Below, piece by piece: positions 1-59,117 of a stretch of 64,000 bases of DNA. The notes under the pieces are model-generated. The model did not search any database. It saw nothing but the letters and a program-made list of their open reading frames with translations, and had not been told where the DNA came from. Location of the stretch: NCBI GenBank assembly GCA_037379345.1, contig CM074513.1:24304001-24368000 (forward strand), read 5' to 3'. Origin of the DNA: Perna viridis. Lineage: Eukaryota. The number at the start of each line of letters is the position of its first letter. Position 1 is the first letter of the stretch. Position numbers and translations under genes: made by a program.

Positions 1-335
1 AAAATGACCCAAAATATATGATGGTATGGGTCAAAGGCCCATGTTTATTGTGTAAAAATAATGCATTATTTATGTTATTGACCCATTGTAATATTTGAAA
101 TCATCCATTTCATGTCACAGGAATGTGTAATTAACCAGTATGGGAAAATTCAAGAGTTATCTCTGGACTCGAACCAAATGAAATTAATCAGTCCACTGCA
201 AGTTCAGATAATTACTACAACATTCAAACAGATGGAAGGACAGATGTAAATAATTTTGATGGTTGAATGAACAAGATAATACCAACAGATCAGTTATTAG
301 TGGAGGTACTAAATCCAAATAGGTGGATTTCTTAC

Positions 336-811
336 ATAATTGATAATTTGCCATACTACTGCCAAGATTCAACATGGTATTACCTCTACTACGGCTATAA
401 GCATCAAACTTTTCAATGATCTCCATATCATCATCATTCATACGAACATCACAAACCCGTTCCATCATTTCTACTGTCAGGGTGAAAGCTGGACCAGCTA
501 AAATCTTTCCCCATTCAGCCTCTTTCTCTGTGACATTATTACCTATGCATTTAATAAAGTTATTGAAAATTTGGCAGCTAGCACCAGGGGTCAGATCAGG
601 AGACATTTTCACATAGGTATCCATGCACTGGTACATCTTATCGAATTCTGTAGCATCACCAGCATAGGTTGGCAGGGGTAGAGTCACTGCAGGGCATGAT
701 GGGTAATTTGTTCTATGATACAGTTCAAAGGTTGCCTTGCCAAGCATAAATATAATGTTGTTACAACCTCTTGTGTGTTGTTCAAAGCAGGTCTTGACAC
801 TGTTCATGTGG
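336..811 (-). CDS. Exon 72 (2-1), closes block D2; alternative in-phase donor at 384
   Basis: [21 protein letters not shown]..; gene probably continues beyond the left edge. Confidence 0.8.
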
Positions 812-3800
812 CTAAAACATACAAAAATGCAGGTTTACTTTTGGGTACTGCAACAATTGAATGAGCCTAAAAAGAAAGCCCTGAAATATGGTTAAATAAT
901 ACTAAACAGATTGAACTAGAAAATTAACATGAAATAAGACATCAGATATTCCATGTTCACTAGCCCATGTTGGACATTAAAAATTTAACTTAAAAATTTG
1001 TACACATCGAAAGTGATCCTTTTCTTGAACTAAATTATTTTCTTGATTTAGGAAGATGTTCAGTAAGTAAAAATGCATTGAAACTGCTATGAAGAGATTT
1101 CATAAAATATATGAATTTGACAGGCACTGGAACTGATAAAAAGGGACTTCAGAAGACATCTTGAATTAGCCAAGTTTCAGGTTTAATCCAGATCTAAATA
1201 AGACAAATTTCACTATACGTGTATATATTATGAGACGATGGCAAAGTAAATGATAAAATAAGTTCATTAATACTAAAATCTATGCATATAGTCTTAAATT
1301 GGGTCCAGCTAAATTGATTTTTAATGTAAGCCCTTGCAAACAGTAGGAAGTTAAAAGAGTAAACTCTACCAATGATATAGTAAATCAAGCCTTACCTGCA
1401 GTCAGTACTGGTGTACTTAGCAGCACAGCCATAAGCCTCTCCCAAGTTGCAGGTCGGTGGTGGAGTACAGGACCCTCTAGAATAAGTTTCAGTAACAAGA
1501 TCTTTCTCAGGGCATCTCTGTAGAGAATTTATCCACCACATTTCCATAAAGCCATTAATTTGATGTAGCTGGTATGATGAACAGTTGTAGGAGTTTTTGT
1601 TCACACATTCCGATATTGTTATTATATCACTGAAAATGAAAATGTCAAGTGTGATTATTTTGTTCATGCAATTAACATAAAAGTGCTGTTGACATGATCA
1701 TTTTAGCAAAATCTGTCAAATGAATTTTGCAGGAATTAACTGTTTGTTTCTTTAAAGGAGAGAAATTCTATTTCATGAGAAAATAAATCAACTTTTATTA
1801 GTGTGCTACATGCACACTGTATTAGCCAAAAAAAAGCAAATATAAACACACTGCTAAAAAATTTACATTAAACTTTTAACACCTACTGATATATTTATCA
1901 TTCATTCACACGACCCCTGTCGAAAACTGTTTTTGCATGTTTAAAGGAAAGATATCCTATTGCATGAGAAATAAATTCACAAGTTTTTCTGTACACTACA
2001 CAAGAACTATATATAAACTGCTAAAACTTTTTATATCAAACTTTTCATACCTACATATGCATGTATATTATCATACCTGTTAACCCTCCCACATTACAGG
2101 GAAACTCTAACAAAATCAATGAAAAATTTAGACTCTTCCAAATGGAAATATGGATTTCGGTTAAAATTACAGTATTTTCTGTGAAAAGTACTAAATAATT
2201 GAACTTTTTACTCAAAAAATTTGTTTTTATGCAAGAATTTCCCACATGAGACAGAAATAATGGGAGAAAATCTCCCATATAAGCTGTTCCAAAGGTTAAC
2301 AGGTATAAAATCATTCACAAAAACTTACCCACAAGGACTTGTCATTGTAAAGCTTTCAGTACAAGTCTTCACAGCCATTACATCACATTTAGCTCCAACA
2401 AAGGCATTTGGGTCAGCACATTCTGTCATGGCCGTCAACAATGGGCACCTGTTACCCATGATGGACTGTATGTAATGCCTCATAGAGTTCATGTACTGTT
2501 GGTCCCCAAGACTGCAGTGTTCTGTGTTGTGGTACACACATGTAACTGCTCTAGATAGATGCCTGTAATGACAATTAAATGGTCAGAAATGGGGCATTAA
2601 CAGTTAAAAGTATTAAAGAACAGCACAAGGTCTAATATTCACTTTTTTCTTAATTGTTCAAAGAATTTTTGAGAGCTTTTTGTTTGCAAGGTGTAAATTC
2701 TTCTTTAAAATGACAAACAAGTTCCATTTTGCTATAGTTTAATATGTAAGTGATGTGAAAAGCATGAAAACCCAGTCATCACTGTAATTGAATAAAAATG
2801 TCACTTTATGTAAAAACATTACATCCTTTTGAAGCCTAGTTCAAATCATGTCAACATCTGTAATACATCAGTTATTGTTTAATTATATCAACATCTGTAA
2901 TACATCAGTTATTGTTTAATTATATCAACATCTGTAATACATCAGTTATTGTTTAATTATATCAACATCTGTAATACATCAGTTATTGTTTAATCAAAAT
3001 ATCAAAGTTTAAACAAAGACAGTAGTGTAGTTTCTAGCTGATATAGTTTATAAGGAAACCAGAAAAAAACTGTGAGCAAAGATCACTAAACCATCTTCCA
3101 ACTAGAGTAACTACTGTTAAAGTACTATTGGTTGTGGGGTTCCAGTTTTCGTGGTTTTCATGGGTAGGTCAAACCATGAATTTGGTTCCCAACAAATAGT
3201 TGATTCCAATTGGTGTGTATACTGATAACTTCAAAACCACAAATTCAAGAATCCAGGAATTTGAGTTTCTTCCCTGATTCACCAAAATTGGTATCCACGA
3301 ATAAAAGTCCTTTCAGAGTATATGGTCAAAATATAACAGGAAGATGATGTTGCTTCAGTCTAAAATTAAATCTAACAAAATCTCCTGTGTTTATGTAAAG
3401 CTGTTGTCAAAAATATCGTGTGGCTGTAAGAGGTATTTGCAAAGAAAACTGTAAAAAAAAAGTTGTGGATAGACAAACCCCACCGACATCATGTTATACC
3501 TTTAAACAAAATGAAAAAAGTGGAGATATCAAAACATAATGATGTTAGTATTTACTTACATGCAAACCTGGTGATCAGGTAATGATTTTGATGACAGGAA
3601 TTTGATAGCAGAGGCAATACATTCTCCTGCCTTTTCAACCTGACATGTTGCTGGCATGGTCAAATTGAGAGCTTTGTCATAACATATGGGATTCTCATTC
3701 TGCATAACTTGTATAATATGATACTTCTGTCGTTTTTCTGCAGAACATTCATCTAGTTTGGTTTTCAGAGTTTCCTTCAAATTTCCCATAATGCTGAAGC

Positions 3801-6800
3801 ATAAAGGTGAATGTTGGAAAAAAAATGTATGCTTATTTATATTTTTCAGGATGAAAAAAAAAATATGCAGTTTTGTGTAAAGAAACATCAGTGGTATAGA
3901 CATCTTTACACTCATGGATGCCATTGACAAAAATCATATATTTTCCTGTTGTTTATGTACTAAATTCTACTTCAACTTGAAGATTAATGATGTCACAATT
4001 TAAAATTACATTGTTTCATTGACATCAAAGGTTGTTCGGATACAAATCTGGGGTCGTTCAGAGCAAAATGACAAGTGTGAATTCATATATTGCGACAGTA
4101 AAATTTAATTTAAAAGTAAAAAAAAAATGAAAATCAAAATTCTTGACTGAAATTTTGTATTAAAAGTTGGTACAATATTTTCAATGATCTTAATTGTTTT
4201 AAAAATTCAAAACAACTTACAGACACATCACAGCGTATGACTCCTGGGTTTTGAATGGCCCTGATACAAAGTAAGTGGCAGCATTGGAAATCATAGCCGA
4301 TATATACCAAGTATCACATACATCATCTTCTAAAATATAAAACACACTAAATGCACAATGTATTAATGACAACAACTTAATTTATAAATTGATTCAGATA
4401 TTGTGGACTAAACATAGCAGAAAGTCACTATAAAACAGGGATGATTTTACAAGGTCATCAAACAAAGCATAAACTGGTAATCGGAAATAAATAAACAGTA
4501 AAAAAGTAATAAATGTAACAGTATACTCCAGATTTCAATTAGCGGAATTCCACTAAAAAGCAGAAAAAAGGTCATCCTTGATAAAAACAGTGAAAAATTA
4601 ATTTTGTGATCAATAGATAATTTTAAATAAACAGCCAAGCTCAAGCACATCATAAGCCTATTCCCCCTTTTTTTTATTTTTGGTTATCACAGTTTCACAG
4701 TTTCATTGGTCTCAGGTACATGTACATATATATTGTAGCATCTATAAATCAAAATCATCATATAATCAAAGAAATCTTTTTGAAATCAATTGCCATCAAT
4801 TACAGTATAAACTAACTTTCCTGAATATGAGTAAGAAGTTGATTCCACTGGTCATTAGACAGCATTTTATCTGTAGTCATGCTCTCGTTATAACCAACAA
4901 CATTCATCAAAACCCTACTGATATTGACAAGATGGTCTGAATACTCGTAACACATAAGGTCTCTGTATCTAGCATACTGGTCTCTCATGCCTCTAGCATA
5001 GATTGTTGGTACCATTTCACCATCAATCTTACTCAAGCAGTGTTCAAATGTATTAAGGGTTTCACAGTAGAGACCCTCAAAAGTGGCTGGTAAAGCTAAG
5101 GCCACTGTAAATGCAGTATCAAACTGAATTGCGCATCTTGCTACTGCATGTGTGTCATCCTGTCTTCTTGCTCTGTAAATATAAAGAAAAAACTAGAAAA
5201 AACTGTGAGCAATTTTCAATAACTTGATAGTATGCACCTTTTGACCTCCATATTGATATGGATAAAATTTAGACTTATATAGGAGGAGCACAATGGGAAT
5301 GTACAATAAACATTCTGTGAAAATCGTACTAAATTCCATTCAGTGGTGTAGGAAGAGCAACAGATAAGCATTGGGTTCCCCAATGTCCCTATTTTCATAA
5401 ATGACAAAGTCCATGTTTTGCTATGAGAAACCCAAAATTGATTTGCATCAAAATAATAATAAAAGGTGCACAATGGGAACATGCAATAAAGATTCTGTGA
5501 AAGTTTCACTGAATGCCATTCAGTGGTACAGGAGGAGAAACAGAAAAGAGACGGGTCGCCCTTGTCCCATATTCATAGATGACAAAGTCCATGTTAGCTA
5601 TGTGAAACCCCTAAACTGATTTGCATGAAAGTTACAATAAAATGTGTATAATGGGAACATGTAATAAAAATTCTGGGATGTTCTATTCAATTCCATTAAG
5701 TGGTGTAGGAGAAGAAGTAATGGATAAGAGATGGGATCCCCCATGTCCCATATTCATAAGTGACTAAGTTCATGTTCTGCTACAAATGTATGTGCTGAGC
5801 TACTTTCAATTTCGATAAAACAACAAAATATTTTTTTTACATTTGTGATTCTCTTTCAAAATGTGTCCTTGCATATGACATGTATAAAAACAAATCCTGA
5901 AATCTAGAACCAATATATTCATTTGAGTACTCATATCAGGTATTCATGAAAAAAAAATCTCAAACTTAGATTTTCTTCATTGTGTTCAACTCCTGAAGTT
6001 TTTCCTAAATTATTCAATATGAAGTTGTTGGTTGGATGGAATTTGAGTGGAGGAAGGATTTGACGAAAATCCAAATTCAAGCTTATTTATGATTTAAGAT
6101 AACTTGGCTCTGATATATTACTTCAGAAAACAGCACTAGCAAATCTGTATGGAGGTCATAACATGAATTTTTCCAGAAAAAAAGCTATAAAAGGATTTTT
6201 CTTCCAGAAAGTATTTCCTGTATATTCTACCACTGTTTGACAGACTTTATGTTTTACTGTTACCACTATGGGTACCAGAGTAGAGAGTTAACACTTCACA
6301 AACCTTTGATCAGCAACTGTTTGTAAGAACATCTTGACCTTTCTGTAACCTTGGCTAGACACATCTGTCAGATTACCAAGTACACCAGTGGCGTTCATCC
6401 TCATCACAACAAGTTTATTTAGCATGGCCGTAATTGGTGTCTCCCTGGTAGGTTCAGGCAGGTCAATCATCATAGATCTAGCTGTAACAAAGGCAACAGT
6501 GCGGGCAAAGTAATGGTCCAGGCGATCAGCTCTACGTTCCATTAACATGTGAGTAATATTCTTCTGACCACAGTTTACTATGTATTCTACCAAGCTAAGA
6601 TCCATTGTGTTCCATACTGATAATAGCTGCATGTAAGAACATCCATTGGTAAGGTCCATAAAGCATTTCATCATATTATCTCTCACAGTATCATCATCGA
6701 TCATACTGAAATATAACGATTAATGTAGGTAATTATTCTGTTGATACTTGTATCATATCATTAGTACAGTTACCTTACTGATCAAGGAAAAAAAATTCTG

Positions 6801-9800
6801 TCCAGGTATGTTTATTCATGAAAAACAGTGATTGTCATTCATCATAAACTAAGTTGATCCATTCATTCATGGATTTAGTCTTTTTTAAGATGTTATTTGA
6901 CAAAAAAAGAACCACATAAAATGATAAGCAAAGTATACTTCCATGTACTGTAAACATATTCATTTTCGTGGATTTGTCATATGAAAATATTAGCAGGTAT
7001 CAATTTTCATTGTTTCAAAAAATGAAAATCCAATTCGCTGGTACTGTATTACATTTTTTTTTTTTCGATCATGAAACAAGCCAAAATAGGTACACCACAA
7101 AAATCAATAAGTTTACAGTATAATTATCCTTAATTTTTCATGATTAGTTCAGGACACAAGTAACAAAAATATTTTGTATAATATCTTACCCACAACCTTT
7201 ATCCATGACAGGCTGCATACACTGTGTATAGACAAGATCAGGATGACATTTGGTCGGTGTTTTAAGTTCTGGGTGACATATATCTTGGTGCATCTGAAGG
7301 TGTGGACAGTGAGATACAGCCTGTCCAATCTTCTCTTTGTACATACTGTGGATACTTGACATATCATCTGATGGCTTACATCCAGAAGTCTGATTACCAA
7401 CACATGTCATCAATTCAGTCATCATCCTGCAAAATAAAATGGTTCCTATAAACTGTGAACGTTACATTCATTGGAATAAATTTAGGAGAAAACAGACAAA
7501 TGAAAATCAATAATCAATTAACTTTGTGAGCATAACAGTCAACTCTCCTACATGTCACTTGCTTCAAATTTAAACCTCCTATTACATGTACCCTAATTTA
7601 CTGAATGGTACCTTTTGTATAAAGAACAAATTTTTGAATACAGGAAGGACTATAGTTACTATAGTATCAGTCTTTATAAAAATCAGACAGAAAGTCAAAA
7701 ACTCATCAAATTCAGTTTTATTTCTGTTCTGTACTGATCACATAACCAGTCTTAATTTTTCATTAGGTTGTTCCATTTTTGAGAAAAAAAAATTATAGAT
7801 AATACATAAAACTGGCACTTTGCAAGAGTTATTGTTCTTGATTTGGTTTCATTTGGTTAGTTTCAGTTGGGAGATAAATGCTTGGTTTTCTTAAAAAATG
7901 CAGATCTGAATGCAGAAATGATTACCATTATGTGAAAGTATAAGATATGTTGACCAAAAAAGCATCGTTTGTTTGGTGGGTTCTTCTTGACCATGAATCA
8001 CTTTACCACTGGCAGTGTGAGTTTTATGTGGACTGGTACTTAAAAATATAGTATATGTAAATCAAAAAGTATTGTCTGTTAAGGTGGGTTCTTCTAAACC
8101 ATGAATCAACTATACCACAGGAAGTGTTTGAATTTCATCTGGACTGGTACTTAAATAAATACATGTAGATGAAATGATACTTACCAACAGAACACATTCT
8201 TCTCATTAGAGCTCATTCCAATTTTAAATTTGTTCATGACCATATGACGATCAAAACATTGCAAGGCTGCAGTCTTGTTACAAACAGTACCAGTCACGTT
8301 CTTGCAGAATACCTCTCGTTTTGGCATAACCATTGGACAGTAGCCTTCACCTACTGTCTGCATAACAGCTTTAATGCCTTTGTAGGCAGCCAGTTTTTCA
8401 TATTCTGAACACTTATTGTGCTTTTGAGCCCATTCCAATGTTATCATGGTGTCATTCAATTGTCTGTTAAATAGACAATAAAGTTTATATATTTTTCCTT
8501 CACCTGACTATTTGCTCTCAACCTTTGTTTTAAATTTTGTTTTGGATAATAATTAAGCTATTTAATGAGTCCTACGGCAGTTTGTCAATACTTTTAAATA
8601 GAGTCTCACCAACTGAGCAATATTCAAAACATTACAAATTATTTGTATTTATTGCAAAATCGACAATTAATTCAACTAATATAACTTTTCATGGATATCT
8701 TAAGCTGATGGTTGATTGAGATGGCACAAAAAAAGCAAGAAAATCGATTTGAGTGAAAATTGCCAAAAATACATTTTTACCACTATTTTGCCTCTAACAA
8801 AATTACGAATACGTAAAAGCCTTTGTATCCTTAGGTTCAAATATATTTTTCCAATCATAAAATAACAATAAAATATAATACAGTCAACCAACCCGCAAAA
8901 GCCCTTTCTATCTGCAGATGGATTCATGGCAGCTAATGCCAACCCTACAATACTTCTGGTTCCACATTCATAGTCTCGCCTATCTGCTGAGCATTGGCTT
9001 TCAAATAAACCATGCTTAATCAATGGTACAATGTCTCCCATCTGTCGGGTCTCAGACATAACGCATGTAGAGGCATGCTTCTCAATACAGTCAAGATTCT
9101 TATAAACCAAGCTGAAAATTGTATAAGTTTATTTCGAATAATTTTTTTTTTAAAATGTCACATTCTAAAGAAAAATCAATTACCGGTATACTTAATATTG
9201 GGCTTTCAGTACAAGTCACTTATCCAAACCTTTCAAAATGACTAGTCAGAAACAATTATTGCAAACATCTTCCATATATACAAATTAAAATAATATTACC
9301 GGAATATATATGGCTAATTGTGCATACTATAGTTGAGAACATGTAAAAATGAAAGCTTACAAATTATCCATGAATTAATCTGAACCTATTGGCATCATCA
9401 TGTAGTAATTGAGCACAACTGAAGCTTAGCAAGAAACATAACCATTACCTTTCATCCAGTTTGCCATCGGCTGCGATAACAGGTACTAGATTGGCTAGAC
9501 ACATCAAGGCAGTCATTGGTTTACATTCCTTATCCTTCTCTGTACAAACAGATAGGATTATAAATACATAGGTGTTAACTCTCCCTATGTTGGCAGGAGA
9601 CTTCTGATATTTCATGAAAAATTCAATATTCTCCCCTTTCGTGCCTGTGTCAAAGCCAGAGATTTATGTGCATTCATGGAAATTTTTCAGTTTTATTTGA
9701 ATTTTCAGTTCAAAATCAAAACTGCTTCAATTCCTGCCAAAACATATAAAAACAAAGACCCTGATAAATCTTCTACTTAGAGAAAATATAGGGAGATTTC

Positions 9801-12800
9801 CCACTTTAGAATTTTCAAAGGTTACACCTATATAAATATCATGACTGTTATACTATTTCATAATAAATGTTAGGAAAAAATTATGCTTAAGAAAAAAAAA
9901 TCATTGTAGAGGTGAAATTATGATTTTGTGGCATTTGGTATGATTTCGAACATTTTATTTTTCATAAATAACAAAATGAAAAGATTTTAAATTTCGCTGT
10001 TGCAAAAAAATAAGATATAACAATTATTATTTTATTATCCTTAGAGTTACCATTGATAAAGTAATAAATTGTGTCAAGGTATCATATATTAACATAAAAA
10101 CCTGTCTAAACTAAACCCTGAAGAAACTGACAACCTGTCTAACTATTTATCTTCTTAAGTCTTTTAAAATTATTTTCAATGAAATTTTAACCTGTAAATA
10201 ACAAAACACCTCCCTAAAGTGGATACAAATTTCAGTTCCTATTGAGGTTGGTTTAGACAAGTTTCAATGTATTTTAAACCTTCTGGCCATAGTTTTTCCT
10301 TATTATTAGTTTTATTAACCCTCCTACCCTAAATTTGTCAAACTGGGAAACCAATAAAATAGAAAATGTTGATTTTGTTGTTGTTGATTATTTCTCCTCC
10401 AACCCAGTGTTTTTCATGCAGAAAAAAACAAAATAATAATGATTCTAATAAAAGATAATTTCTGCATTTAAGAATCTGAATTTATACTATATTTGATGTA
10501 GTTAGTTGTTGTACATCAGTTTTTAATTTCAAACTGTGTCAAAAAAAAGAATAAGTGTTAGAATTGTTACATTGTAAGATAATCTCCTTGTGAAATAAAC
10601 AAAAAAATATTTTTTATCTTGATAAGGTTGGTACTGAAAAAAAATTAACAGCAGTTCAATTTTTTTCTCGACCTCTTCTGTTTGAGTTCTATAAAAGAAA
10701 ATAAAAGAAAATAAAAGATTTGTAAAACTAATATAATAATAACTATGGCCAAATGTAAGAAATGTCTTATTACCTTCCATCATAGACCATTTATATTTGT
10801 TACACATGTTACCAGAACAGAACTGGACATTTTCTCCAAAGGTAGAGCCATACAATGGATACATACATCCTTTCTTTATCATTGTATTGTTCCTGATCAA
10901 TGTGAAACAACCCTGAAAGTGGAGTAATATACATTAACACTACCTTCAAACTACAATCATAGCTGTTGTAATACTGTAAATTGAGAAATCACTACATGTA
11001 CATGTATTAGGTACTGCAATTTTGTTACTTTAGCTGAAAATGTGATATCAATTTTTGCAGTTTTGCTTCTATTTCAGTGTTAAAAATTATATTATGCTTA
11101 TGTTACTGCAGTGACAGAAACACTACAATAATATTTGATCTCACAGTAATCATAAATAGAATAAATATAATACATGGTCATTGGTATGTACAGAATTTTA
11201 CCTTATAAAGATTTCTTAGTGAATGCAGTATTACAAAATCATAAAATGGCAAAAGATAATTAGTTAGCTGAATGCTGAAAACTTTCAAAGGTACAGGGAA
11301 ATGGAAAATAAAAGAGATCCACAAAGGTATCTAAAACAAACGAACAGAGAAAAGGGGTAACCTAAATAGAAAATAAAAGGGATCTAAGGGTCCACAAAGG
11401 TATATAAAACAAACAACAGAGAAAAGGGGTAACCTAAATAGAAAATAAAAGGGATCCAAGAGTCAACAAAGGTATATAGAAACAATATCTTTGATATGAA
11501 GTCTTGATGGTCCTTTGTAATTAATTCTCTCATGATATGAGACAGCCCTTACCTGTCCAGGTTGACAGTGCTCTGGTGTTTGTCTGTTGCACTCTATATT
11601 GTCTTTCTCCCCATCACAAGAATAACATTTCTGGCCTGAAGTCAGAAAAATAGGTAAGTTATGTGCCAAATTTTATATTTTACCGTGTGTGCATTTACAC
11701 AGATTTCAATCATCACAGAGAAAACATACAATATGATGTTAAGTTGACTTTGTATCAAACGATGAACTTTACCTAAGTTAGAAAAATCTAGCACACTATA
11801 TCTGTTACCTGTCTTGGATGACAAAAAAAAATTCACAAAAGTTTCACACTACAATTACCAGGTCAATGACATTAGATTGAGTGTTTGCATCCAGATGGCT
11901 CTGGTACTGATAAGATTGCTCCATAGTATGAGTCCTTCTCCATGCTGATGGCTCAAACAGTGCTCTCTTGATTAATATGAGAATTTAACTGATTCTACAC
12001 ATTTTCCCCATATTACTTCTATACAATGATCCATCTTAGATACACAAGATATAACTTACCCATACAGACAGCAGAAACAGCATGAGACAGCGCTTGAAGT
12101 GTTGCATTCATCAGTGCCCTTTTACTCTGTGGTAGAATTGGGAGGTAGGCCATGGCACCATGCATCACCTCCACCATACTAGAACATGTTGTCAATTTCT
12201 TTACACCCATGACCTGCATCAGCCCTTCTATCATCTCAGTATTGTTTGGCTTCATGTGAAGGTCGAAGTATCCCATGGCTGCCTTAGTTAGTTCGCCTTT
12301 CATTCTATCCTTCATTGATTCTACCAATCCACGGTTCAAGTAGTCCCAGCGGTTGAAGTATTCTTTTTCTTCATCCTTCATCAGGAATGTATTGATCTGG
12401 TCCATCATCTGGCCAATCTTCACGTAGGCAAGTGTGTGATAGGCTGAAGTCACAATTTCATGTCCGTCTCCCATTCCAACAATAATTTTCATGACATCAT
12501 TCATTACCATATTGACAGAAATACCCATCTTCTTCATTCTTTCTTCTCCAACCTTTTCAGTCATTTCCTTCATGATATAGTTAGAAACATCCATCAAGTC
12601 CTTCATGGTTGGATCATTGTCAAGGTTCAGCATGGCAATTCTAACCCCCTTAACAAACTGTTCATCTCTTTCTACCAGACCCTCATTCATCATCACATAT
12701 TTAACCATATGCAACAAATCCATCATTAATGAATCACCTGTCACTCTCATATCTGACATTTTTTCCATCTGGTCGTCCATGTCTGATTTCCTATCCATTT

Positions 12801-57800: not shown

Positions 57801-59117
57801 AATTTAATTCATTGGTAATTTTTGGTTGATATAAAGGCCATAAAAAATAATATGTCTGTTTATGATTACATTCTAAACAAAAATAGGGTTGGTTGGTTGG
57901 CATATTTCTTTTATTTCTTATGCACAGGTTTAACCTTTACTTTATTTAAATCATCAGTCCTGGAGTAAAATTTTGTGGTCCACTCCATGTTTATCATAAG
58001 TATATTATTATATATATATATATATTTCTTATGGCCTAATTTTAATTCATAGTATGGCCTTACAACAAAAAAAGGTCTTTGACCTTACTCTACATTAGTT
58101 CTGTTCTTAAAAAAATCACAGGATGTTAGCAATGTTGGAAGTTACAGAAATCTTGGATATTCATACCTAATTCAACAACAGTTTTTAACTCACATTAAAC
58201 CTATGTTAATCTAGCTCCTTTGGTGCTTATTAAAAAAAAAGGAAGAGGTTCATCTAGTTATAAAATTGAGTCTGCAGAATCTTAATTCAAAGCATTTCTG
58301 TTGTACATGTTTCATATAGGAAAAAGAGTCCATTTTCAGTTGAAACTTTAGTTCAATGTCATACATTGTATACACAATATGTCTTACCCACAAAGAACAT
58401 GAGACTTTTGAACTGAAGCAACTGGTGATGCAAGAATATATTTTGCCCCACTGGAACATTCTTGAGCAACTGGAATGTTACATCTTGGCTTTTGGCAAGC
58501 CTCTTTATCCATCTGTGACAAAACTGCTGTTGTCATGGATACCATATTCTTAATCTGACTACTTTCGCACTGCTGTGTGGATATGGTGAGACATCTGTGT
58601 GTCTGTTTAGCTTGCCTGAAATTTATATCAAAACAGCTAATACTAATACATCTTTGCTATGGTCAGCAAAAGTAAGGGTTATGGTTTACATCTAAATACA
58701 TTTTCATTGGCATACATGTAGTTTCTTCCCTATTTTACACTGATACATCTTTTAATACCCCAACTATGAAACAAAGTTTGGGAATAAATAGCAATCAGCA
58801 TGATAGACCTTCATTAAAATGTACTGCCAAATAGGTCGGTACAAGTTCTAGAAATAGTTTTTTATACATATAACTTAATTATCAAAGTTTTTTCCATCTT
58901 TCATTCCATCACATTTGGAAAATTTCATGGAAACTTTATAGTAGAATTCAAATGTTGATCTGTTTTTAATGTTACTGTAAATAACAAAATAAATGTTCTC
59001 ACCGACAAGTGATAGCCATTGAAGTATCAGCAGCAACATATGCAAATCCTGTAATGCACTGTGCAACAGTATCCATATGACAATTTTTATCGTCATCTTC
59101 CTCAGATACTTGAAATC
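336..59117 (-). CDS. Giant multi-exon gene (72 exons in window, ~5,550 aa, partial at both ends): Met/Cys-rich, probably secreted protein with ~54 six-Cys helical repeats, 1 WAP and 2 Ly6/uPAR domains
   Basis: Manual splice tracing: all 72 exons are flanked by AG/GT, all 71 junction phases are compatible, and no junction creates a stop. Recurrent Cys pattern; summed exon length 16,647 nt. Confidence 0.88.
1396..1629 (-). CDS. Exon 71 (2-2)
   Basis: [20 protein letters not shown]. Confidence 0.87.
2074..2305. mobile_element. MITE family 1 (TA-flanked, TIR CCTGTTAACC..GGTTAACAGG)
   Basis: Perfect 13-bp inverted ends atacctgttaacc/ggttaacaggtat; related copies at ~9569-9830, 43804-44158, 53171-53472. 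Confidence 0.7.
2329..2562 (-). CDS. Exon 70 (2-2)
   Basis: [29 protein letters not shown]; paralog of exon 30. Confidence 0.87.
2851..2994. repeat. 37-bp minisatellite x~4
   Basis: tcaacatctgtaatacatcagttattgtttaattata, near-perfect tandem copies. Confidence 0.95.
3112..3320. mobile_element. MITE family 2 (TACTGT..ACAGTA termini)
   Basis: ~205 bp, shares internal sequence with 33274-33483 and 39577-39787; shorter relative at 6946-7120. Confidence 0.7.
3560..3793 (-). CDS. Exon 69 (2-2)
   Basis: [21 protein letters not shown]. Confidence 0.87.
4221..4329 (-). CDS. Exon 68 (1-2), opens block D2
   Basis: [36 protein letters not shown]; 109 nt like exons 9 and 34. Confidence 0.83.
4817..5172 (-). 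CDS. Exon 67 (2-1), closes block D1
   Basis: [33 protein letters not shown]. Confidence 0.85.
5190..5780 (+). repeat. Helentron/HINE-like element with three diverged ~179-bp internal tandem units
   Basis: tgacaaagtccatgtt-like motif at ~5400, ~5579, ~5760; 5' motif aactagaaaaaactgtgagc shared with ~3058, ~22768 and ~41447. Confidence 0.55.
6304..6705 (-). CDS. Exon 66 (2-2)
   Basis: [27 protein letters not shown]. Confidence 0.84.
7190..7426 (-). CDS. Exon 65 (2-2)
   Basis: [21 protein letters not shown]. Confidence 0.87.
7975..8160. repeat. Local ~115-bp direct duplication
   Basis: ggtgggttcttct..accatgaatca..tggactggtacttaaa present twice. Confidence 0.75.
8185..8463 (-). CDS. Exon 64 (2-2)
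   Basis: [23 protein letters not shown]. Confidence 0.87.
8893..9111 (-). CDS. Exon 63 (2-2)
   Basis: [28 protein letters not shown]; 219 nt like exon 43. Confidence 0.87.
9449..9539 (-). CDS. Exon 62 (1-2), opens block D1
   Basis: [31 protein letters not shown]. Confidence 0.8.
10774..10912 (-). CDS. Exon 61 (0-1): Ly6/uPAR domain 2, C-half
   Basis: [26 protein letters not shown]. Confidence 0.86.
11290..11485. repeat. ~75-bp imperfect tandem repeat x~2.5
   Basis: gaaaataaaagggatc..acaaaggtat..aaac repeated. Confidence 0.75.
11553..11635 (-). CDS. Exon 60 (1-0): Ly6/uPAR domain 2, N-half
   Basis: [28 protein letters not shown]. Confidence 0.86.
12060..13273 (-). CDS. Exon 59 (2-1), 1214 nt, ~15% Met, closes block C3
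   Basis: [24 protein letters not shown]; about 60 Met in ~405 aa (hand count). Confidence 0.9.
13545..13742. repeat. Degenerate minisatellite (ccataggcattgcccat..taca)
   Basis: About 7 imperfect copies. Confidence 0.75.
13868..14122 (-). CDS. Exon 58 (2-2)
   Basis: [20 protein letters not shown]. Confidence 0.88.
14596..15135 (-). CDS. Exon 57 (2-2), 540 nt with charged Met-rich insert
   Basis: [27 protein letters not shown]. Confidence 0.88.
15425..15746 (-). CDS. Exon 56 (1-2), Asp/Met/Gly low-complexity linker plus half module
   Basis: ..[40 protein letters not shown]. Confidence 0.86.
16676..16899 (-). CDS. Exon 55 (2-1)
   Basis: [21 protein letters not shown]. Confidence 0.84.
17471..17576 (-). 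CDS. Exon 54 (1-2), opens block C3
   Basis: [35 protein letters not shown]. Confidence 0.84.
18082..18370 (+). repeat. Dispersed repeat (core gaatatgtcaaagagacaac); inverted copy ~46810-46985, decayed copy ~30900-30990
   Basis: Shared core motif on opposite strands. Confidence 0.55.
18447..18485 (-). CDS. Exon 53, 39-nt microexon (1-1)
   Basis: ttttcag|[12 protein letters not shown]|gtgagc. Confidence 0.7.
19037..19431 (-). CDS. Exon 52 (2-1), closes block C2
   Basis: [15 protein letters not shown]. Confidence 0.87.
19454..19673. mobile_element. TTAA-flanked MITE (Kolobok-like, GG..CC termini)
   Basis: TTAA|GGGGGTAGACCTAGGGTAAGG ... CCTTACCCTAGGTCTACCTCC|TTAA, ~40-bp imperfect TIR. Confidence 0.8.
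20247..20513 (-). CDS. Exon 51 (2-2)
   Basis: [21 protein letters not shown]. Confidence 0.87.
21321..21587 (-). CDS. Exon 50 (2-2)
   Basis: [20 protein letters not shown]. Confidence 0.88.
22524..22751 (-). CDS. Exon 49 (2-2)
   Basis: [25 protein letters not shown]; missed by ORF track. Confidence 0.86.
23281..23485 (-). CDS. Exon 48 (1-2), opens block C2
   Basis: [42 protein letters not shown]. Confidence 0.86.
24574..24971 (-). CDS. Exon 47 (2-1), closes block C1
   Basis: [25 protein letters not shown]. Confidence 0.87.
25875..26031 (-). CDS. Exon 46 (1-2)
   Basis: [36 protein letters not shown]; missed by ORF track. Confidence 0.83.
26737..26936 (-). CDS. Exon 45 (2-1)
   Basis: [21 protein letters not shown]. 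Confidence 0.85.
27261..27524 (-). CDS. Exon 44 (2-2)
   Basis: [13 protein letters not shown]. Confidence 0.87.
27744..27962 (-). CDS. Exon 43 (2-2)
   Basis: [28 protein letters not shown]; 219 nt. Confidence 0.87.
28341..28428 (-). CDS. Exon 42 (1-2), opens block C1
   Basis: [30 protein letters not shown]. Confidence 0.83.
28849..29005 (-). CDS. Exon 41 (0-1): Ly6/uPAR domain 1, C-half
   Basis: [35 protein letters not shown] (KGC and C-x4-CN motifs). Confidence 0.86.
29669..29790. mobile_element. Small hairpin MITE with ~30-bp TIRs
   Basis: ggcgtcaaattcacaaaaagtcttaagagt / acacttacgactttttgtgaatttgatgcc. Confidence 0.75.
29834..29925 (-). CDS. Exon 40 (1-0): Ly6/uPAR three-finger domain 1, N-half
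   Basis: [30 protein letters not shown]. Confidence 0.85.
30192..30356. mobile_element. MITE with 15-bp TIR atcaatagacccttt
   Basis: Perfect inverted termini; internal gagcatgctc palindrome twice. Confidence 0.7.
30392..30694 (-). CDS. Exon 39 (1-1), closes block B3
   Basis: [29 protein letters not shown]; AAG acceptor. Confidence 0.84.
31125..31342 (-). CDS. Exon 38 (2-1)
   Basis: [22 protein letters not shown]. Confidence 0.84.
31989..32186 (-). CDS. Exon 37 (2-2)
   Basis: [20 protein letters not shown]. Confidence 0.87.
32812..33075 (-). CDS. Exon 36 (2-2)
   Basis: [20 protein letters not shown]. Confidence 0.88.
33274..33483. mobile_element. MITE family 2 copy
   Basis: tactgtgaaagtact..ggtatccac..tttcaca. 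Confidence 0.7.
33564..33851 (-). CDS. Exon 35 (2-2)
   Basis: [26 protein letters not shown]; paralog of exon 17. Confidence 0.88.
34095..34203 (-). CDS. Exon 34 (1-2), opens block B3
   Basis: [36 protein letters not shown]. Confidence 0.85.
34928..35017 (-). CDS. Exon 33 linker (1-1)
   Basis: tttgtag|[30 protein letters not shown]|gtaact; 90 nt. Confidence 0.72.
35176..35552 (-). CDS. Exon 32 (2-1), closes block B2
   Basis: [22 protein letters not shown]. Confidence 0.86.
35679..35781. repeat. Nested inverted repeat (hairpin), probably TE-derived
   Basis: agaaatctcagacacca / tggtgtctgagattttct with inner arms ggatttcaa / ttgaaatct. Confidence 0.65.
36203..36430 (-). CDS. Exon 31 (2-2)
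   Basis: [21 protein letters not shown]. Confidence 0.87.
36880..37240 (+). mobile_element. 5'-truncated LINE 3' end (ORF C-terminus plus 3' UTR)
   Basis: Reads [25 protein letters not shown] (36882-36959), resembling bivalve CR1-type LINE ORF tails (from memory); 3' part recurs inverted at 53277-53419. Confidence 0.65.
37400..37678 (-). CDS. Exon 30 (2-2)
   Basis: [28 protein letters not shown]. Confidence 0.88.
37916..38167 (-). CDS. Exon 29 (2-2)
   Basis: [20 protein letters not shown]. Confidence 0.88.
38569..38704 (-). CDS. Exon 28 (1-2), opens block B2
   Basis: [37 protein letters not shown]; paralog of exons 9, 48, 68. Confidence 0.86.
39070..39428 (-). CDS. Exon 27 (2-1), closes block B1
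   Basis: [21 protein letters not shown]. Confidence 0.87.
39577..39787. mobile_element. MITE family 2 copy
   Basis: tactgtgaaagtact..agtacttcacagta. Confidence 0.75.
40171..40422 (-). CDS. Exon 26 (2-2)
   Basis: [29 protein letters not shown]; paralog of exon 5. Confidence 0.87.
40573..40842 (-). CDS. Exon 25 (2-2)
   Basis: [17 protein letters not shown]; paralog of exon 4. Confidence 0.87.
41447..41642. repeat. 28-bp minisatellite x7
   Basis: aacatctagaagtactgtgatcacaaag; one mismatch across seven copies. Confidence 0.95.
41447..42070 (+). mobile_element. Helentron/HINE-like non-autonomous element
   Basis: 5' motif, two ~160-bp internal units, (GACG/CAGA)n microsatellite at ~41978-42033, then ttcctatataccccc. 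Confidence 0.6.
42279..42515 (-). CDS. Exon 24 (2-2)
   Basis: [23 protein letters not shown]; paralog of exon 3. Confidence 0.88.
42889..43113 (-). CDS. Exon 23 (2-2)
   Basis: [21 protein letters not shown]; paralog of exon 2. Confidence 0.88.
43323..43407 (-). CDS. Exon 22 (1-2), opens block B1
   Basis: [28 protein letters not shown]; paralog of exon 1. Confidence 0.83.
43646..43666 (-). CDS. Exon 21, 21-nt microexon (1-1)
   Basis: cttttacag|EMEKPSH|gtgagt with pyrimidine tract. Confidence 0.6.
43804..44158. mobile_element. MITE family 1 copy with internal 33-bp tandem array (43964-44118, ~4.5 copies)
   Basis: ta|cctgttaac..ggttaatagg|ta; unit tctcccacatgagacagtgccaatgggggagag. Confidence 0.75.
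44294..44430. mobile_element. MITE family 3 (cagtaaaacctgtctaa..ttagacag); relative at ~10096-10270
   Basis: Imperfect TIRs in two copies. Confidence 0.5.
44592..44716 (-). CDS. Exon 20 (2-1), closes short block A3
   Basis: [22 protein letters not shown]. Confidence 0.82.
45152..45251 (-). CDS. Exon 19 (1-2)
   Basis: [33 protein letters not shown]. Confidence 0.82.
45980..46134 (-). CDS. Exon 18 (2-1)
   Basis: [31 protein letters not shown]. Confidence 0.86.
47140..47376 (-). CDS. Exon 17 (2-2)
   Basis: [25 protein letters not shown]; missed by ORF track. Confidence 0.86.
47657..47771 (-). CDS. Exon 16 (1-2), opens block A3
   Basis: [39 protein letters not shown]. Confidence 0.85.
48419..48454 (-). 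CDS. Exon 15, 36-nt microexon (1-1)
   Basis: tttacag|[12 protein letters not shown]|gtaagt. Confidence 0.72.
48588..48675. repeat. ~31-bp tandem repeat x3
   Basis: aaaaaa..gctcaacagttttcc. Confidence 0.8.
49080..49265 (-). CDS. Exon 14 (1-1), closes block A2
   Basis: [27 protein letters not shown]. Confidence 0.85.
49648..49847 (-). CDS. Exon 13 (2-1)
   Basis: [25 protein letters not shown]. Confidence 0.86.
50277..50561 (-). CDS. Exon 12 (2-2), acidic tract
   Basis: [33 protein letters not shown]; AAG acceptor. Confidence 0.82.
51015..51299 (-). CDS. Exon 11 (2-2)
   Basis: [21 protein letters not shown]; 285 nt. Confidence 0.88.
51687..51935 (-). CDS. Exon 10 (2-2)
   Basis: [21 protein letters not shown]; 249 nt. 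Confidence 0.86.
52201..52309 (-). CDS. Exon 9 (1-2), opens block A2
   Basis: [36 protein letters not shown]. Confidence 0.85.
52921..52959 (-). CDS. Exon 8, 39-nt microexon (1-1)
   Basis: tttttag|[13 protein letters not shown]|gtaagt. Confidence 0.7.
53277..53419 (-). mobile_element. Short LINE 3' tail nested in a family-1 MITE
   Basis: Near-identical reverse complement of ~37095-37238; atgaga on both sides. Confidence 0.75.
54025..54165 (-). CDS. Exon 7 (1-1): WAP / four-disulfide-core domain
   Basis: [42 protein letters not shown], canonical 8-Cys WAP pattern. Confidence 0.92.
54494..54885 (-). CDS. Exon 6 (2-1), closes block A1
   Basis: [24 protein letters not shown]; 392 nt. Confidence 0.88.
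55205..55444 (-). CDS. Exon 5 (2-2)
   Basis: [20 protein letters not shown]; 240 nt. Confidence 0.88.
56017..56280 (-). CDS. Exon 4 (2-2), poly-Asp linker
   Basis: [24 protein letters not shown]; 264 nt. Confidence 0.88.
56951..57322. repeat. ~95-bp direct repeat pair (56951-57042, 57228-57322)
   Basis: aagtctt..ctgata..gattgtct.tgaagatcaaca..gtgttacaaatttaca present twice. Confidence 0.7.
57484..57708 (-). CDS. Exon 3 (2-2)
   Basis: [23 protein letters not shown]; 225 nt. Confidence 0.88.
58388..58615 (-). CDS. Exon 2 (2-2)
   Basis: [38 protein letters not shown]; 228 nt; missed by ORF track. Confidence 0.88.
59003..59117 (-). CDS. Exon 1 in window (phase 1-2), opens block A1
   Basis: tttcag|..[38 protein letters not shown]|gtgag; this frame is not the one in the ORF track. 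Confidence 0.85.

Follow-up and report, generated by a model that had tools for sequence, protein, structure and literature searches.

Organization of the locus

The DNA analysed is a stretch of 64,000 nt, free of N, of the Perna viridis contig CM074513.1 (positions 24,304,001 to 24,368,000, henceforth the window; coordinates are counted from its first base, those of the downstream flank being negative). The window is best read as the central part of a single minus-strand gene, at least 88 kb long and made up of ~90 exons, the product of which would coat the cell surface as a type I membrane protein. We give this joint reading a probability of about 0.6. Modelled over the window plus 90 kb of flanking DNA, the gene runs from window coordinate ~65887 to -22211 (CM074513.1:24281789-24369887), with 87 exons and ~19.4 kb of coding sequence. 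The main features are the following.

1..64000, minus strand: gene body, extending past both window edges; gene-finder chain and colinear tblastn matches with Pecten and Pinctada
336..59117, minus strand: exon chain of the earlier note; in the present model 64 exons, 15,504 nt, 5,107 aa and 311 Cys, stop-free
59003..59117, minus strand: first exon of that chain, encoding the C-half of a module; the N-half exon is outside the window at ~65075-65211, across an intron of ~6 kb
336..811, minus strand: last exon in the window, encoding one module and the N-half of another; the C-half partner is at window coordinate -1471..-1582

The earlier note, made from the window alone, had described at 336-59117 a single gene of many exons, with a frame open at both ends, for a giant modular extracellular protein rich in Met and Cys. 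The present chain was built independently by a crude splice-aware gene finder, trained on the window itself, and is the one phase-compatible chain obtained. It has the same terminal exons (59117..59003 and 811..336) and continues beyond both window edges. The long stop-free frame thus stands. The 72 exons, 16.6 kb and ~5,550 aa formerly counted exceed what is modelled here; they are plausible, as the present model visibly truncates or misses exons, such as the second exon of the first Ly6-like domain described below. About one third of the modelled exons score weakly for splice sites or coding, and some are surely wrong. The gene had also been called hidden. This holds with respect to a prokaryote-style ORF list, but NCBI already predicts orthologues in molluscs, as the 6,864-aa Pecten maximus protein XP_033756168.1.

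Introns within 336-59117 have a median length of 625 nt and are mostly in phase 2 (42 introns), less frequently in phase 1 (19) or phase 0 (3). The typical exon is ~228-285 nt long, is flanked by phase-2 introns and encodes one six-Cys module; frames open after a pyrimidine-rich AG acceptor, and close with Cys-X followed by a GTAAG-type donor. In the remaining modules a phase-1 intron divides the N-half from the C-half.

At least two further exons are found upstream of the window. Downstream, the chain runs for ~22 kb past the window edge, through more modules and then C-terminal domains, to a stop. Extension of the contig at both sides, proposed earlier as a way to find the terminal exons, has therefore been successful at the 3' end, but the signal-peptide exon has not been found by scans for ATG, hydrophobic stretch and phase-1 donor over 66-80 kb, by a coding-potential scan or by relaxed tblastn with the Pecten N-terminus. 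An apparent match to the latter at 68942-68986 was discarded, as it lacks splice sites. We infer the signal peptide of the Perna protein from the scallop orthologue.

The six-cysteine module

The module repeated along the chain is ~75 aa long. Alignment of 24 single-exon modules gave the pattern C-x7-C-x22-C(P)-loop-C-x7-C-x15-20-C. A jackhmmer search of all six-frame open stretches, seeded with one exon, retrieved ~35 frames that bear modules, every one of them on the minus strand, and the profile of the 24 modules scored 36 matches on the minus strand and none on the plus strand over 154 kb. Within 336-59117, 36 N-halves and 32 C-halves are detected by profile, against 3-5 in a reversed control, and ~48 modules by Cys count. 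The array of modules announced in the earlier note is thus found, in a number lower than the ~54 then given. The whole ectodomain would roughly hold 55-65 modules, ~40-50 of which lie in the window. N-half and C-half exons always follow each other in the correct order, and Cys come six per module, which is consistent with pairing inside each module.

Identity among modules is as low as 10-27%, yet in scallop and pearl oyster each of them matches the module that occupies the same place in the array. For this reason the modules are regarded as old and under selection.

AlphaFold2 folds a single module, given a 46-sequence alignment, into 3-4 helices (pLDDT 77, pTM 0.62). Pfam searches with ten exon frames and 46 modules returned no consistent family, and the 46-module profile had no matches among PDB sequences at E<=10. 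Foldseek comparison of the module model to the PDB gave nothing at E<=0.001 (best TM-score 0.39). The best Z score obtained with VIA-align against 48,161 chains was 5.5; designed helical bundles, copper-storage four-helix bundles and glypican cores (Z 4.1-5.2) were matched, all within noise for helical models. The module appears as yet undescribed, being without a Pfam entry, a PDB-sequence match or a clear fold match. In the whole 723-Mb genome, the module profile retrieved only its own 24 training exons, few candidates having been scored; a Pecten paralogue (P0028) matched other contigs at scattered, isolated places only, none of which formed a module array.

A protein-atlas search with the module yielded unnamed arthropod clusters only, plus a lead to DUF19, found in the feature search as a cluster at rank 9 with a score of 0.80. 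DUF19 proteins of nematodes are likewise extracellular, Cys-rich and of function not known. The domain has ~12 Cys, roughly two modules' worth, and the 157 positions of the profile correspond to about twice the module length. A DUF19/T20D4.11-like module (PF01579) was nonetheless rejected: the HMM matches none of 46 modules (E<=5) and none of nine full-length relatives (E<=1 for six, E<=0.01 for three). A six-frame PF01579 scan of the whole genome gave nothing on this contig, and the profile is without match even in Lottia V4AML1, named 'DUF19 domain-containing' by UniProt. In the literature, DUF19 led only to unrelated papers on DUF19xx families.

Domains and inserts within the array

The array hosts one WAP domain, two Ly6-like domains, and Met-rich or Met/Asp-rich inserts. 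All these extra elements fall at one and the same point of the module, the loop that follows the third Cys, to which a phase-1 intron corresponds in the gene.

54025..54165, minus strand: WAP four-disulfide core, one phase 1-1 exon, between host N-half 54494-54885 and C-half 52201-52309
28847..29925, minus strand: first Ly6/uPAR-like three-finger domain, two exons (29834-29925; ~28847/28908-29005), ending C..CN
15425..15746, minus strand: Met/Asp/Glu-rich acidic stretch followed by a C-half; 21 Met in 106 aa, D-M-rich repeats
14596..15135, minus strand: single-exon module with a charged Met-rich insert of ~100 aa after the third Cys; from the exon chain
12060..13273, minus strand: longest exon, 1,214 nt; module N-half, then a helix-prone insert of ~340 aa; 404 aa, 60 Met (15%)
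10774..11635, minus strand: second Ly6/uPAR-like three-finger domain, two exons (11553-11635; 10774-10912), between N-half exon 12060-13273 and C-half exon 9449-9539

The WAP domain, recognized already in the first reading, has 8 Cys and scores 50.7 bits (E 2.2e-13) against PF00095, well above the gathering threshold, which is 20.8. The two three-finger domains reported with it are conserved in relatives, but their Pfam scores are all below threshold. Each is split over two exons, scored one by one (PF00021, PF16975, PF00087). The first matches DUF753, an insect Ly6-like family, at E 2.8e-4 (22.0 bits, cut-off 24.7), and is 50% identical to residues 2335-2386 of Pecten P0001, at a colinear place. 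The second matches UPAR_LY6_2 at E 1.1e-5 (26.1 bits, cut-off 31.5), and is 59% identical to residues 871-897 of Mizuhopecten P0033. The UPAR_LY6 score is 17.4 (cut-off 24.8). The end motif C..CN is found in both domains, and a relative from Elysia passes the Toxin_TOLIP threshold (23.7 vs 21.2).

The Met-rich and Met/Asp inserts are also present as described, for instance in 12060-13273 and 15425-15746. The 404-aa exon 12060-13273 is colinear with Pecten residues 3735-4136, Pinctada 444-803 and Mizuhopecten 463-867 (20-24% identity), and found nothing in the protein atlas. A 27-nt unit was identified by TRF at 15590-15645, within the acidic stretch.

Transcripts and orthologues

Exons were compared to assembled contigs from runs X1, X2, X3 and X5, belonging to three studies. 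Contigs were taken as RNA because introns are absent from them at GT..AG ends, and the comparison covers 8 of ~87 exons.

42889..43113, minus strand: module exon; 3' junction confirmed, joint 42515/42889 in X1, X2, X3
42279..42515, minus strand: module exon; both junctions confirmed, joints 42515/42889 and 40842/42279
40573..40842, minus strand: Met-rich module exon, 16 Met; both junctions confirmed, 3 bases at the 3' edge differing between contigs and window
40171..40422, minus strand: eight-Cys module exon; both junctions confirmed
39070..39428, minus strand: one module and the N-half of the next; both junctions confirmed
38569..38704, minus strand: C-half exon; both junctions confirmed
37916..38167, minus strand: canonical six-Cys module exon, target of the structure prediction; both junctions confirmed
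37400..37678, minus strand: module exon; 5' junction confirmed, the contig running into the next exon

Mapping of RNA to the predicted junctions had been indicated as a check. All seven testable junctions (37400-43115) are reproduced in spliced RNA-like contigs, and one contig links eight exons and extends on both sides. This contig measures 4,999 nt, and none of the reads or contigs reaches across all ~19 kb of coding sequence; we infer a single full-length transcript.

Relatives of the protein are found in scallops, pearl oysters, snails and a ribbon worm, and amount to 37 among 1.84 billion representative proteins; Lottia 231431 and Tubulanus LOC141900431 are included. In the four best-scoring relatives, 13-35 stretches per protein match the module profile. 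Names were looked up for 20 relatives. Those that are named are 'uncharacterized', 'hypothetical' or named after a domain, in agreement with the earlier view that no characterized protein has this architecture. A Kunitz-type motif is visible by eye in a relative from Ylistrum. In a literature search by accession and LOC number, the sole mention of an orthologue was one row of a digestive-gland differential-expression table, which records transcription of the scallop gene in that tissue (PMC8150855).

The Perna chain is colinear, module by module, with two Pecten maximus models, LOC117338915 (XP_033756170.1, 541 aa, with signal peptide) and LOC117338914 (XP_033756168.1, P0001, 6,864 aa), as well as with the Pinctada imbricata pair KAK3094578.1 and KAK3095673.1 (FSP39_003616/017472) and with Mizuhopecten P0033. 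Colinear HSPs with the Pecten pair run from window coordinate 65222 to -17611. HSPs with Pecten P0001 are 22, all in order except that of the WAP; Pinctada P0003 gave 13 and Mizuhopecten P0033 nine. Of the nine HSPs with the 541-aa Pecten piece (P0005) seven are colinear and two fall on paralogous modules; residues 93-140 of this piece align by tblastn to 65222-65082, and residues 144-177 to 59106-59005. At colinear places, the Pecten and Pinctada models match the Perna chain in the EGF region, in one three-finger domain and in the long insert rich in Met; the Pro/Thr stalk, the transmembrane helix, the polybasic site and a high Met content (7.2-9.4%) are shared as well. They differ in that identity is only ~20-50% and the WAP lies elsewhere in the array. 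Moreover, each annotation cuts the gene into two models, where one chain is found here.

Shorter genes clustered in tandem, or exon copies in decay, could in principle mimic a giant gene, as any subset of exons is phase-compatible when the repeated exon is symmetric (phase 2-2); both Pecten and Pinctada annotators did split the orthologue, and eight exons have been checked against RNA. We regard such a cluster as most improbable. No in-frame stop occurs over 87 exons, halves of modules are never out of order, and modules diverged to 10-27% identity still match their positional counterparts in scallop and pearl oyster. The 5-kb spliced contig extends past the stretch compared. Across 154 kb, only one orthologue piece bearing a signal peptide is matched, at the 5' end, and only one transmembrane segment with stop is found, at the 3' end. 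One gene rather than several is indicated, because colinear HSPs span the locus and neither a stop nor a transmembrane exon occurs in the chain before its 3' end. The stop-free, phase-compatible chain, module matches on one strand only, spliced contigs and colinear orthologues all agree with the one-gene claim of the earlier note. The Perna protein, sharing array, colinearity and C-terminal order, would belong to a lophotrochozoan group of giant proteins composed of six-Cys modules, VWD, EGF and a transmembrane segment.

The C-terminal part and membrane topology

Past the array, the chain encodes in order a VWD domain, a conserved polybasic (furin-type) site, EGF, a Pro/Thr stalk, one transmembrane helix and a tail of ~66 aa ending at the stop. 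The corresponding exons are located outside the window, at window coordinates -12664 to -22211. The VWD domain ends with the motif LCGSYD.N; its Pfam match is weak, the best single exon scoring 13.6 bits against a cut-off of 22.9, as 5-6 short exons share the domain and, like those of EGF, were scored singly (PF00094). VWD and EGF exons are colinear with the VWD (PF00094, E 9.5e-10, 39.4 bits) and EGF of Pinctada, and matching C-terminal Pfam domains were found in relatives P0003 and P0038. The transmembrane stretch, VILIILGVLTAGFALISILLAC, follows the Pro/Thr stalk as in Pecten. The polybasic site, KRKKR in the Perna chain, is conserved in all six relatives featuring this region, which come from bivalves, gastropods and the nemertean. 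N-x-S/T sequons are 73. The tail reads SPAF at a position that, by eye, is occupied by NPAY in Pecten and NLAY in Plakobranchus.

As the chain continues into VWD, EGF, stalk, transmembrane helix and tail, the product is a predicted type I membrane protein and not simply a secreted one. The extracellular modular part deduced in the first reading is retained, but simple secretion is at odds with a transmembrane helix and a cytoplasmic tail found ~22 kb past the window. The protein is probably cleaved into two subunits at the polybasic site.

These data bear on the proposal of a secreted structural matrix of shell, byssus, egg coat or mucus, released by cleavage and cross-linked outside the cell. 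A large, Cys-rich, glycosylated protein bearing a VWD domain does recall gel-forming mucins and some matrix proteins, and cleavage at the polybasic site could free the ectodomain. A matrix is all the same very unlikely in our opinion. The protein has a membrane anchor and a cytoplasmic tail; six Cys per module fit internal pairing, and neither a CK nor a C-terminal dimerisation domain was seen; low-complexity Gly/Ala/Ser/Asp biomineral motifs are missing save in two inserts. The only expression record available, that of the scallop orthologue, is from digestive gland (PMC8150855). Anchor and tissue together disfavour the shell, byssus or egg-coat roles listed in the earlier note.

Methionine content

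Met accounts for 9.3% of residues in the module region and for 2.4% in the C-terminal (VWD-EGF-TM) part. The orthologues of Pecten, Pinctada and Mizuhopecten are likewise rich in Met, while paralogues, gastropods and nemertean are poor in it. Leu decreases where Met increases. Within the module, Met residues keep away from the core columns of highest conservation and occupy mostly mixed, partly exposed ones, and inserts reach 15-20% Met, accompanied by Asp/Glu.

It may be supposed that the Met load itself is the function, the protein serving as an extracellular oxidant sink, by reversible oxidation of Met, or as a Cu(I)/Ag(I)-type buffer or store in a tissue that accumulates metal, with the Cys modules as a mere stable scaffold. 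The contrast between the two parts of the same protein, an enrichment common to three bivalve orthologues and absent from paralogues, gastropods and nemertean, the exchange of Leu for Met, and the location of Met at partly exposed columns and in acidic inserts all speak in favour. On balance, we find the hypothesis quite unlikely. Relatives with 2-3% Met keep the architecture, which indicates that Met is not required for the basic role of the family, and composition is equally compatible with selection for Met and with relaxed Leu-to-Met drift.

Comparison with known systems

VWDE, a name borne also by the Plakobranchus relative GFN84062.1, shares with the Perna protein a VWD followed by EGF in the C-terminal part. 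The Perna protein differs in being for >85% a helical six-Cys array, in its transmembrane anchor and in the polybasic site between VWD and EGF; VWDE is not known to carry such an array.

In architecture the protein resembles MUC4/sialomucin complex, which is processed into two subunits and coats epithelial surfaces. In both, the ectodomain is very large and glycosylated, VWD and EGF occur, and a single transmembrane helix precedes a short tail. In contrast to MUC4, neither NIDO nor AMOP was detected in the Pfam matches of relatives, and the GDPH autocleavage motif is absent, the sequence being here GTNAMSTFDG and the cleavage motif polybasic. Folded, disulfide-bonded helical modules replace Pro/Thr/Ser repeats, and Pro/Thr residues form a short stalk only. 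On these three counts (no NIDO/AMOP in relatives, GDPH replaced, stalk short) a membrane mucin of the MUC4 type was discarded.

LRP1 and LRP2 (megalin) offer an analogy only. They too combine dozens of six-Cys modules, EGF, furin-type cleavage and type I topology, and the tyrosine-type motif of their tails has a counterpart in some relatives. The module of Perna is, on the contrary, helical and unrelated in sequence to LDL-A; YWTD propellers are missing, and the tail motif is not conserved. Membership of the LDL-receptor family was rejected, as neither window exons nor relatives gave LDL-A or YWTD/EGF Pfam matches.

An endocytic receptor working by the same logic, though unrelated in sequence, is a distinct hypothesis. 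Digestive cells feed by endocytosis; modules would bind cargo at their apical side, and a furin-cut heterodimer would cycle through endosomes by means of a tyrosine or NPxY-type tail signal. The giant six-Cys array, with EGF, furin-type site, single transmembrane helix and short tail, suits an LRP1-like machine, the NPAY and NLAY tails of Pecten and Plakobranchus (SPAF here, all by eye) could provide the signal, and the scallop orthologue is expressed in digestive gland (PMC8150855). Against this, NPxY is conserved neither in Perna nor in Tubulanus, no LDL-A, YWTD or other receptor modules were found, and WAP/Ly6 insertions and heavy glycosylation suit a surface coat at least equally. We hold an endocytic receptor to be fairly unlikely.

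Function and significance

Our best guess is that the protein, once cleaved, coats the cell surface of the digestive epithelium or offers it a multivalent binding scaffold. A type I glycoprotein of ~6,500 residues or more would be made, and a furin-type convertase would cut it at the polybasic site in the secretory pathway. Of the two resulting subunits, the small one would sit in the membrane, and the other, huge and N-glycosylated, would stay attached to it or be shed. The product may coat an epithelium, probably that of the digestive gland, and act there as a scaffold for multivalent binding or for buffering proteases; hints to function are the protease-inhibitor domains of the family, WAP here and, as read by eye, a Kunitz-type motif in the Ylistrum relative. 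The many Met, exposed in part, may form soft hydrophobic surfaces, or surfaces that scavenge oxidants or bind metal. Two candidate roles of the earlier note may also apply: a redox or metal function, which would here fall to the Met, and a scaffold for multivalent ligands or defence.

A more speculative scheme may also be outlined, which we judge unlikely as a whole. The module would represent an undescribed loop-display superfamily, the loop having repeatedly accepted WAP, Ly6 and Met-rich segments. The bivalve group would have been re-coded to ~9% Met as a membrane-tethered digestive surface, buffering oxidants or Cu(I), and the orthology of modules would predate the split among Perna, scallop and pearl oyster.

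Giant uncharacterized surface proteins are common in invertebrate genomes, and as no long-standing question is opened here the interest of the finding is moderate. Four aspects deserve attention: a single loop of the module that houses WAP, Ly6 and Met-rich segments as nested insertions; the polybasic site shared by all six relatives with that region; the strict positional orthology of strongly diverged repeats, with no concerted evolution; and the lineage-specific Met enrichment, ~4x the level of the C-terminal part of the same protein. The family, known to databases only as 'uncharacterized' or split models, includes proteins among the largest of molluscs, and is found also in a nemertean. 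Since both Pecten and Pinctada annotations split one gene, the Perna chain may serve as a template for annotating the locus.

A repeated six-cysteine module on the minus strand

The window, which lacks Ns and belongs to an assembly of 723 Mb in 46 contigs, is AT-rich (GC 30-40%), and its ORFs of bacterial style are all short. A Cys-rich peptide of ~75 aa recurs in stop-to-stop frames of the minus strand, starting right behind pyrimidine-rich AG acceptors and ending with Cys-X directly at GTAAG-type donors. The locus is an animal gene with many introns, encoded on the minus strand. The repeat reported in the earlier note is real. A jackhmmer search from a single exon over all six-frame open stretches retrieved ~35 frames, every one on the minus strand, and a profile built from 24 single-exon modules, scanned over 154 kb (window plus flanks), matched the minus strand 36 times and the plus strand never. 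Modules fit the pattern C-x7-C-x~22-C(P)-variable loop-C-x~7-C-x~15-20-C, in which four Cys are near-invariant and two are majority residues; pairwise identity is just 10-27%.

AlphaFold2 gave three helices from 24 sequences (pLDDT 70). From 46 sequences (pLDDT 77, pTM 0.62) it placed helices at residues 2-13, 18-38, 57-73 and 79-82, and a disordered loop at 45-51. Foldseek found no match to the module model at E<=0.001, the best hit of an exhaustive structure aligner (Z 5.5, to designed bundles) is under the meaningful level for helical models, and the sequence profile found none among PDB chains. Two weak leads, the UniProt name of the Lottia protein V4AML1 and an atlas score of 0.80, pointed to DUF19. 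This assignment was set aside, as the current Pfam DUF19 model matches no module, relative or window frame; a remote link may nevertheless exist.

Gene model and transcripts

Exons were chained by a splice-aware dynamic-programming gene finder whose codon log-odds and splice matrices came from iterative training on the window. The span proposed earlier, 336-59117, was recovered without its coordinates as input (outer exons 59117..59003 and 811..336). At looser thresholds, the phase-compatible chain in this span comprises 64 exons (median 228 nt), 15,504 nt, 5,107 aa and 311 Cys. Introns (median 625 nt) are in phase 2 in 42 instances, phase 1 in 19 and phase 0 in 3. The usual unit is an exon carrying one module between phase-2 introns. 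In about one-third of the modules a phase-1 intron separates an N-half from a C-half, each with three Cys, in an order that is never reversed. The 72 exons and 16.6 kb counted earlier exceed this chain, which is ~1.1 kb shorter in coding sequence; those higher figures are plausible, though not reproduced individually, because about one-third of the model exons score weakly and at least one, exon 2 of the first Ly6 domain, is shortened. Long plus-strand ORFs of 89-183 aa with much His, Ser and Ile (12460-13156 and 15412-15820), located opposite Met-rich exons, were rejected as genes: they are mirror images, ATG-rich sense sequence reading as CAT-rich antisense.

Eighteen public runs of the organism contain part of an 8-kb test stretch, and three runs, guessed to be RNA, contain 24-29% of its words, which is the exonic share of the stretch. 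Four runs from three studies, whose RNA nature is a guess, were compared with 37300-43250. Contigs skip exactly the predicted introns (7/7), all with plus-strand ends CT..AC, that is GT..AG on the minus strand; at junction 40422|40573 three bases at the exon edge differ. At these seven junctions the check proposed in the earlier note agrees with the model. That the modules belong to a cluster of separate genes is unlikely: a single 4,999-nt contig spans all eight exons of this stretch and extends 1.4 kb and 1.6 kb beyond its two sides. No contig or read covering the entire coding sequence was found. At four exonic positions (39305, 42407, 42962, 42969) the assembly differs by one base from spliced contigs obtained from other samples; these are probably alleles. 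Intronic positions 39489-39886 reach word depths of 140-730 in all four RNA-like runs, versus 2-20 for exons, and show many loose ends and internal joints; they are therefore taken as a dispersed repeat, highly transcribed outside this mRNA.

Other introns also host repeats.

Repeats in and near the gene
1-181: first ~165-180 bases recur, with 76-84% identity, in at least 40 copies spread over 13 or more further contigs; apparently a short element of SINE or MITE type, within the intron that lies below exon 336-811
37000-37313 (plus), 53172-53447 (minus), ~64.7-64.9 kb (just outside the window): one dispersed repeat with a pseudo-ORF, intronic in either orientation
2844-2994: minisatellite, 37 nt x 4.1
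5284-5776: minisatellite, 180 nt x 2.7
13540-13714: minisatellite, 57 nt x 2.9, within the locally GC-richer 12-14 kb
41447-41643: minisatellite, 28 nt x 7, 98% matches
43964-44118: minisatellite, 33 nt x 4.8

Extension beyond the window

Flanks of 60 kb below and 30 kb above were added. The frame had been called open at both ends, and the chain does run past the window both downstream and upstream; in full, the model extends over 88 kb, with 87 exons and 19.4 kb of coding sequence.

Parts of the gene outside the window (minus strand; negative coordinates are downstream, those above 64000 upstream)
~65788-65887: exon, C-half
~65075-65211: exon, N-half with phase-1 donor, partner of the 59117 exon across a ~6-kb intron
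as far as -10375: more module exons
beyond -10375: exons reading as a VWD domain (..STFDG.., LCGSYDANKLND)
behind VWD: polybasic site KRKKR|A, then an EGF domain (CPNDCSGHGTCK.. / GTCTCSNGYMSDDC)
behind EGF: Cys-containing beta-like region, then a Pro/Thr/Asn stalk
chain end: one transmembrane stretch (VILIILGVLTAGFALISILLAC), a 66-aa tail, stop at -22211

Matches of single exons to the Pfam VWD and EGF models are weak. The exons are colinear with Pinctada KAK3095673.1, in which VWD (E 9.5e-10) and EGF are recognised, as they are in the nemertean relative. With its transmembrane stretch, the product is predicted to be a membrane protein and not the simply secreted one envisaged earlier. Of the end exons to be sought, the stop exon was located; a signal-peptide exon was not found upstream in this genome, and the 30 kb above the gene showed no further module exons. 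Open frames at ~75841-76104 and 88805-89062, in the same 30 kb, may derive from mobile elements.

Inserted domains

Identification of the WAP domain is clear-cut (PF00095, E 2.2e-13). The two three-finger (Ly6) domains announced with it have the terminal C..CN and conserved counterparts, 50-59% identical, at the colinear places of the Pecten and Mizuhopecten proteins; divided between two exons each, they score under the Pfam cut-offs. Toxin_TOLIP / UPAR_LY6 matches occur in the relatives from Elysia and Lottia. Met/Asp inserts are present as well (15425-15746). This stretch, a 404-aa Met-rich exon, the ~100-aa insert of 14596-15135, the exon for WAP and one Ly6 exon pair all lie behind the third Cys of a host module, and the first Ly6 pair is preceded by an exon with the same phase-1 donor. 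The insert-bearing loop is unstructured in the AlphaFold2 model and is marked by the phase-1 intron in split modules. The exon for WAP lies within that intron and has the classical phases 1-1, and the loop position is shared; the module therefore acts as a scaffold in which a single loop is permissive.

Relatives and colinearity

Among 1.84 billion representative proteins, 37 were found with the module profile; long relatives have 9-35 matching stretches each. Short ones include ORF fragments of the same genome, of near-identical sequence or of a closer relative.

Long relatives
Pecten maximus: 6,864 aa
other bivalves: Pinctada imbricata, Ylistrum balloti, Mizuhopecten yessoensis, Sinanodonta woodiana
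gastropods: Lottia gigantea, Batillaria attramentaria, Elysia marginata and Plakobranchus ocellatus (the last named VWDE)
Tubulanus polymorphus: nemertean

As anticipated, none is a characterised protein: the long relatives are named uncharacterized or hypothetical, one with an automatic domain-based name. Orthologues are thus already predicted, yet uncharacterised. The Pecten protein (LOC117338914) yields 22 tblastn HSPs at the locus (20-50% identity), strictly ordered from 47366 to -17611, with the exception of the WAP domain, which in the scallop sits elsewhere in the array. Its neighbour LOC117338915 (541 aa, Met 7.2%) begins with a signal peptide and is colinear with 65222 to 54786, so the two scallop models are one ~7,400-aa gene divided by annotation. 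The Pinctada imbricata orthologue is likewise divided (KAK3094578.1/KAK3095673.1), and in Mizuhopecten XP_021366699.1 part of the orthologue is joined to the N-terminus of a flavin monooxygenase (FMO-like, E 4.7e-18). Each module is closer to its positional counterpart in another bivalve than to its neighbours, which marks the array as old and not homogenised. Paralogues may exist elsewhere in the genome, as a whole-genome search scored few candidates.

Composition, predicted cleavage and possible role

The module region contains 9.3% Met, 6.1% Cys and 73 N-x-S/T sequons. Met drops to 2.4% in the VWD-EGF-transmembrane part of the same protein, and base composition of the genome is therefore not a simple explanation. 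Enrichment is common to the orthologues of Pecten (7.2%), Pinctada (8.7-9.4%) and Mizuhopecten (7.6%), and is missing in scallop paralogues, the unionid, gastropods and the nemertean (1.6-3.8%). Leu is lower where Met is higher. Aligned modules have most of their Met in columns of mixed hydrophobic/polar character and little in the best-conserved Leu/Val/Ile columns (Spearman 0.36), which suggests that many methionines are partly exposed. A methionine-based redox or metal buffer is a live rival reading of the function.

All six relatives that include the region have a polybasic site between VWD and EGF, seemingly at the same place, as compared by eye without alignment.

Polybasic sites
this gene: KRKKR|A
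Pecten: ERKKR|Q
Pinctada: TRRKR|Q
Batillaria: TRRRR|A
Tubulanus: RERRRR|A
Plakobranchus: IRKR|Q

Its retention across bivalves, gastropods and a nemertean argues for predicted processing by a proprotein convertase, which would divide the protein into a giant chain, the ectodomain, and a small one in the membrane. LRP1 is processed into two chains in the same way, and MUC4 too, via other chemistry. An LRP-like endocytic receptor is also a live rival; the tail motifs NPAY (Pecten), NLAY (Plakobranchus) and SPAF (this gene) are suggestive, not conserved.

One table row (PMC8150855) lists LOC117338914 transcripts in P. maximus digestive gland, strongly down after domoic-acid injection; in the literature as consulted, nothing else experimental was found on the protein or its orthologues. 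Domains of protease-inhibitor type occur in the family, WAP here and a Kunitz-like motif, read by eye and unscanned, in a Ylistrum relative; a Pecten paralogue has a lectin-like motif at its start, also read by eye. A component of shell, byssus or egg matrix is unlikely, given the predicted anchor and the digestive-gland transcripts of the scallop orthologue. From these transcripts, the membrane anchor, heavy glycosylation, the protease-inhibitor-type domains and the cleavage site, the best reading is that the protein, once cleaved, would coat the apical surface of the digestive epithelium or act there as a scaffold for multivalent binding. What is new is the undescribed module; the giant modular, putatively cleaved surface glycoprotein that it builds is of a known kind.
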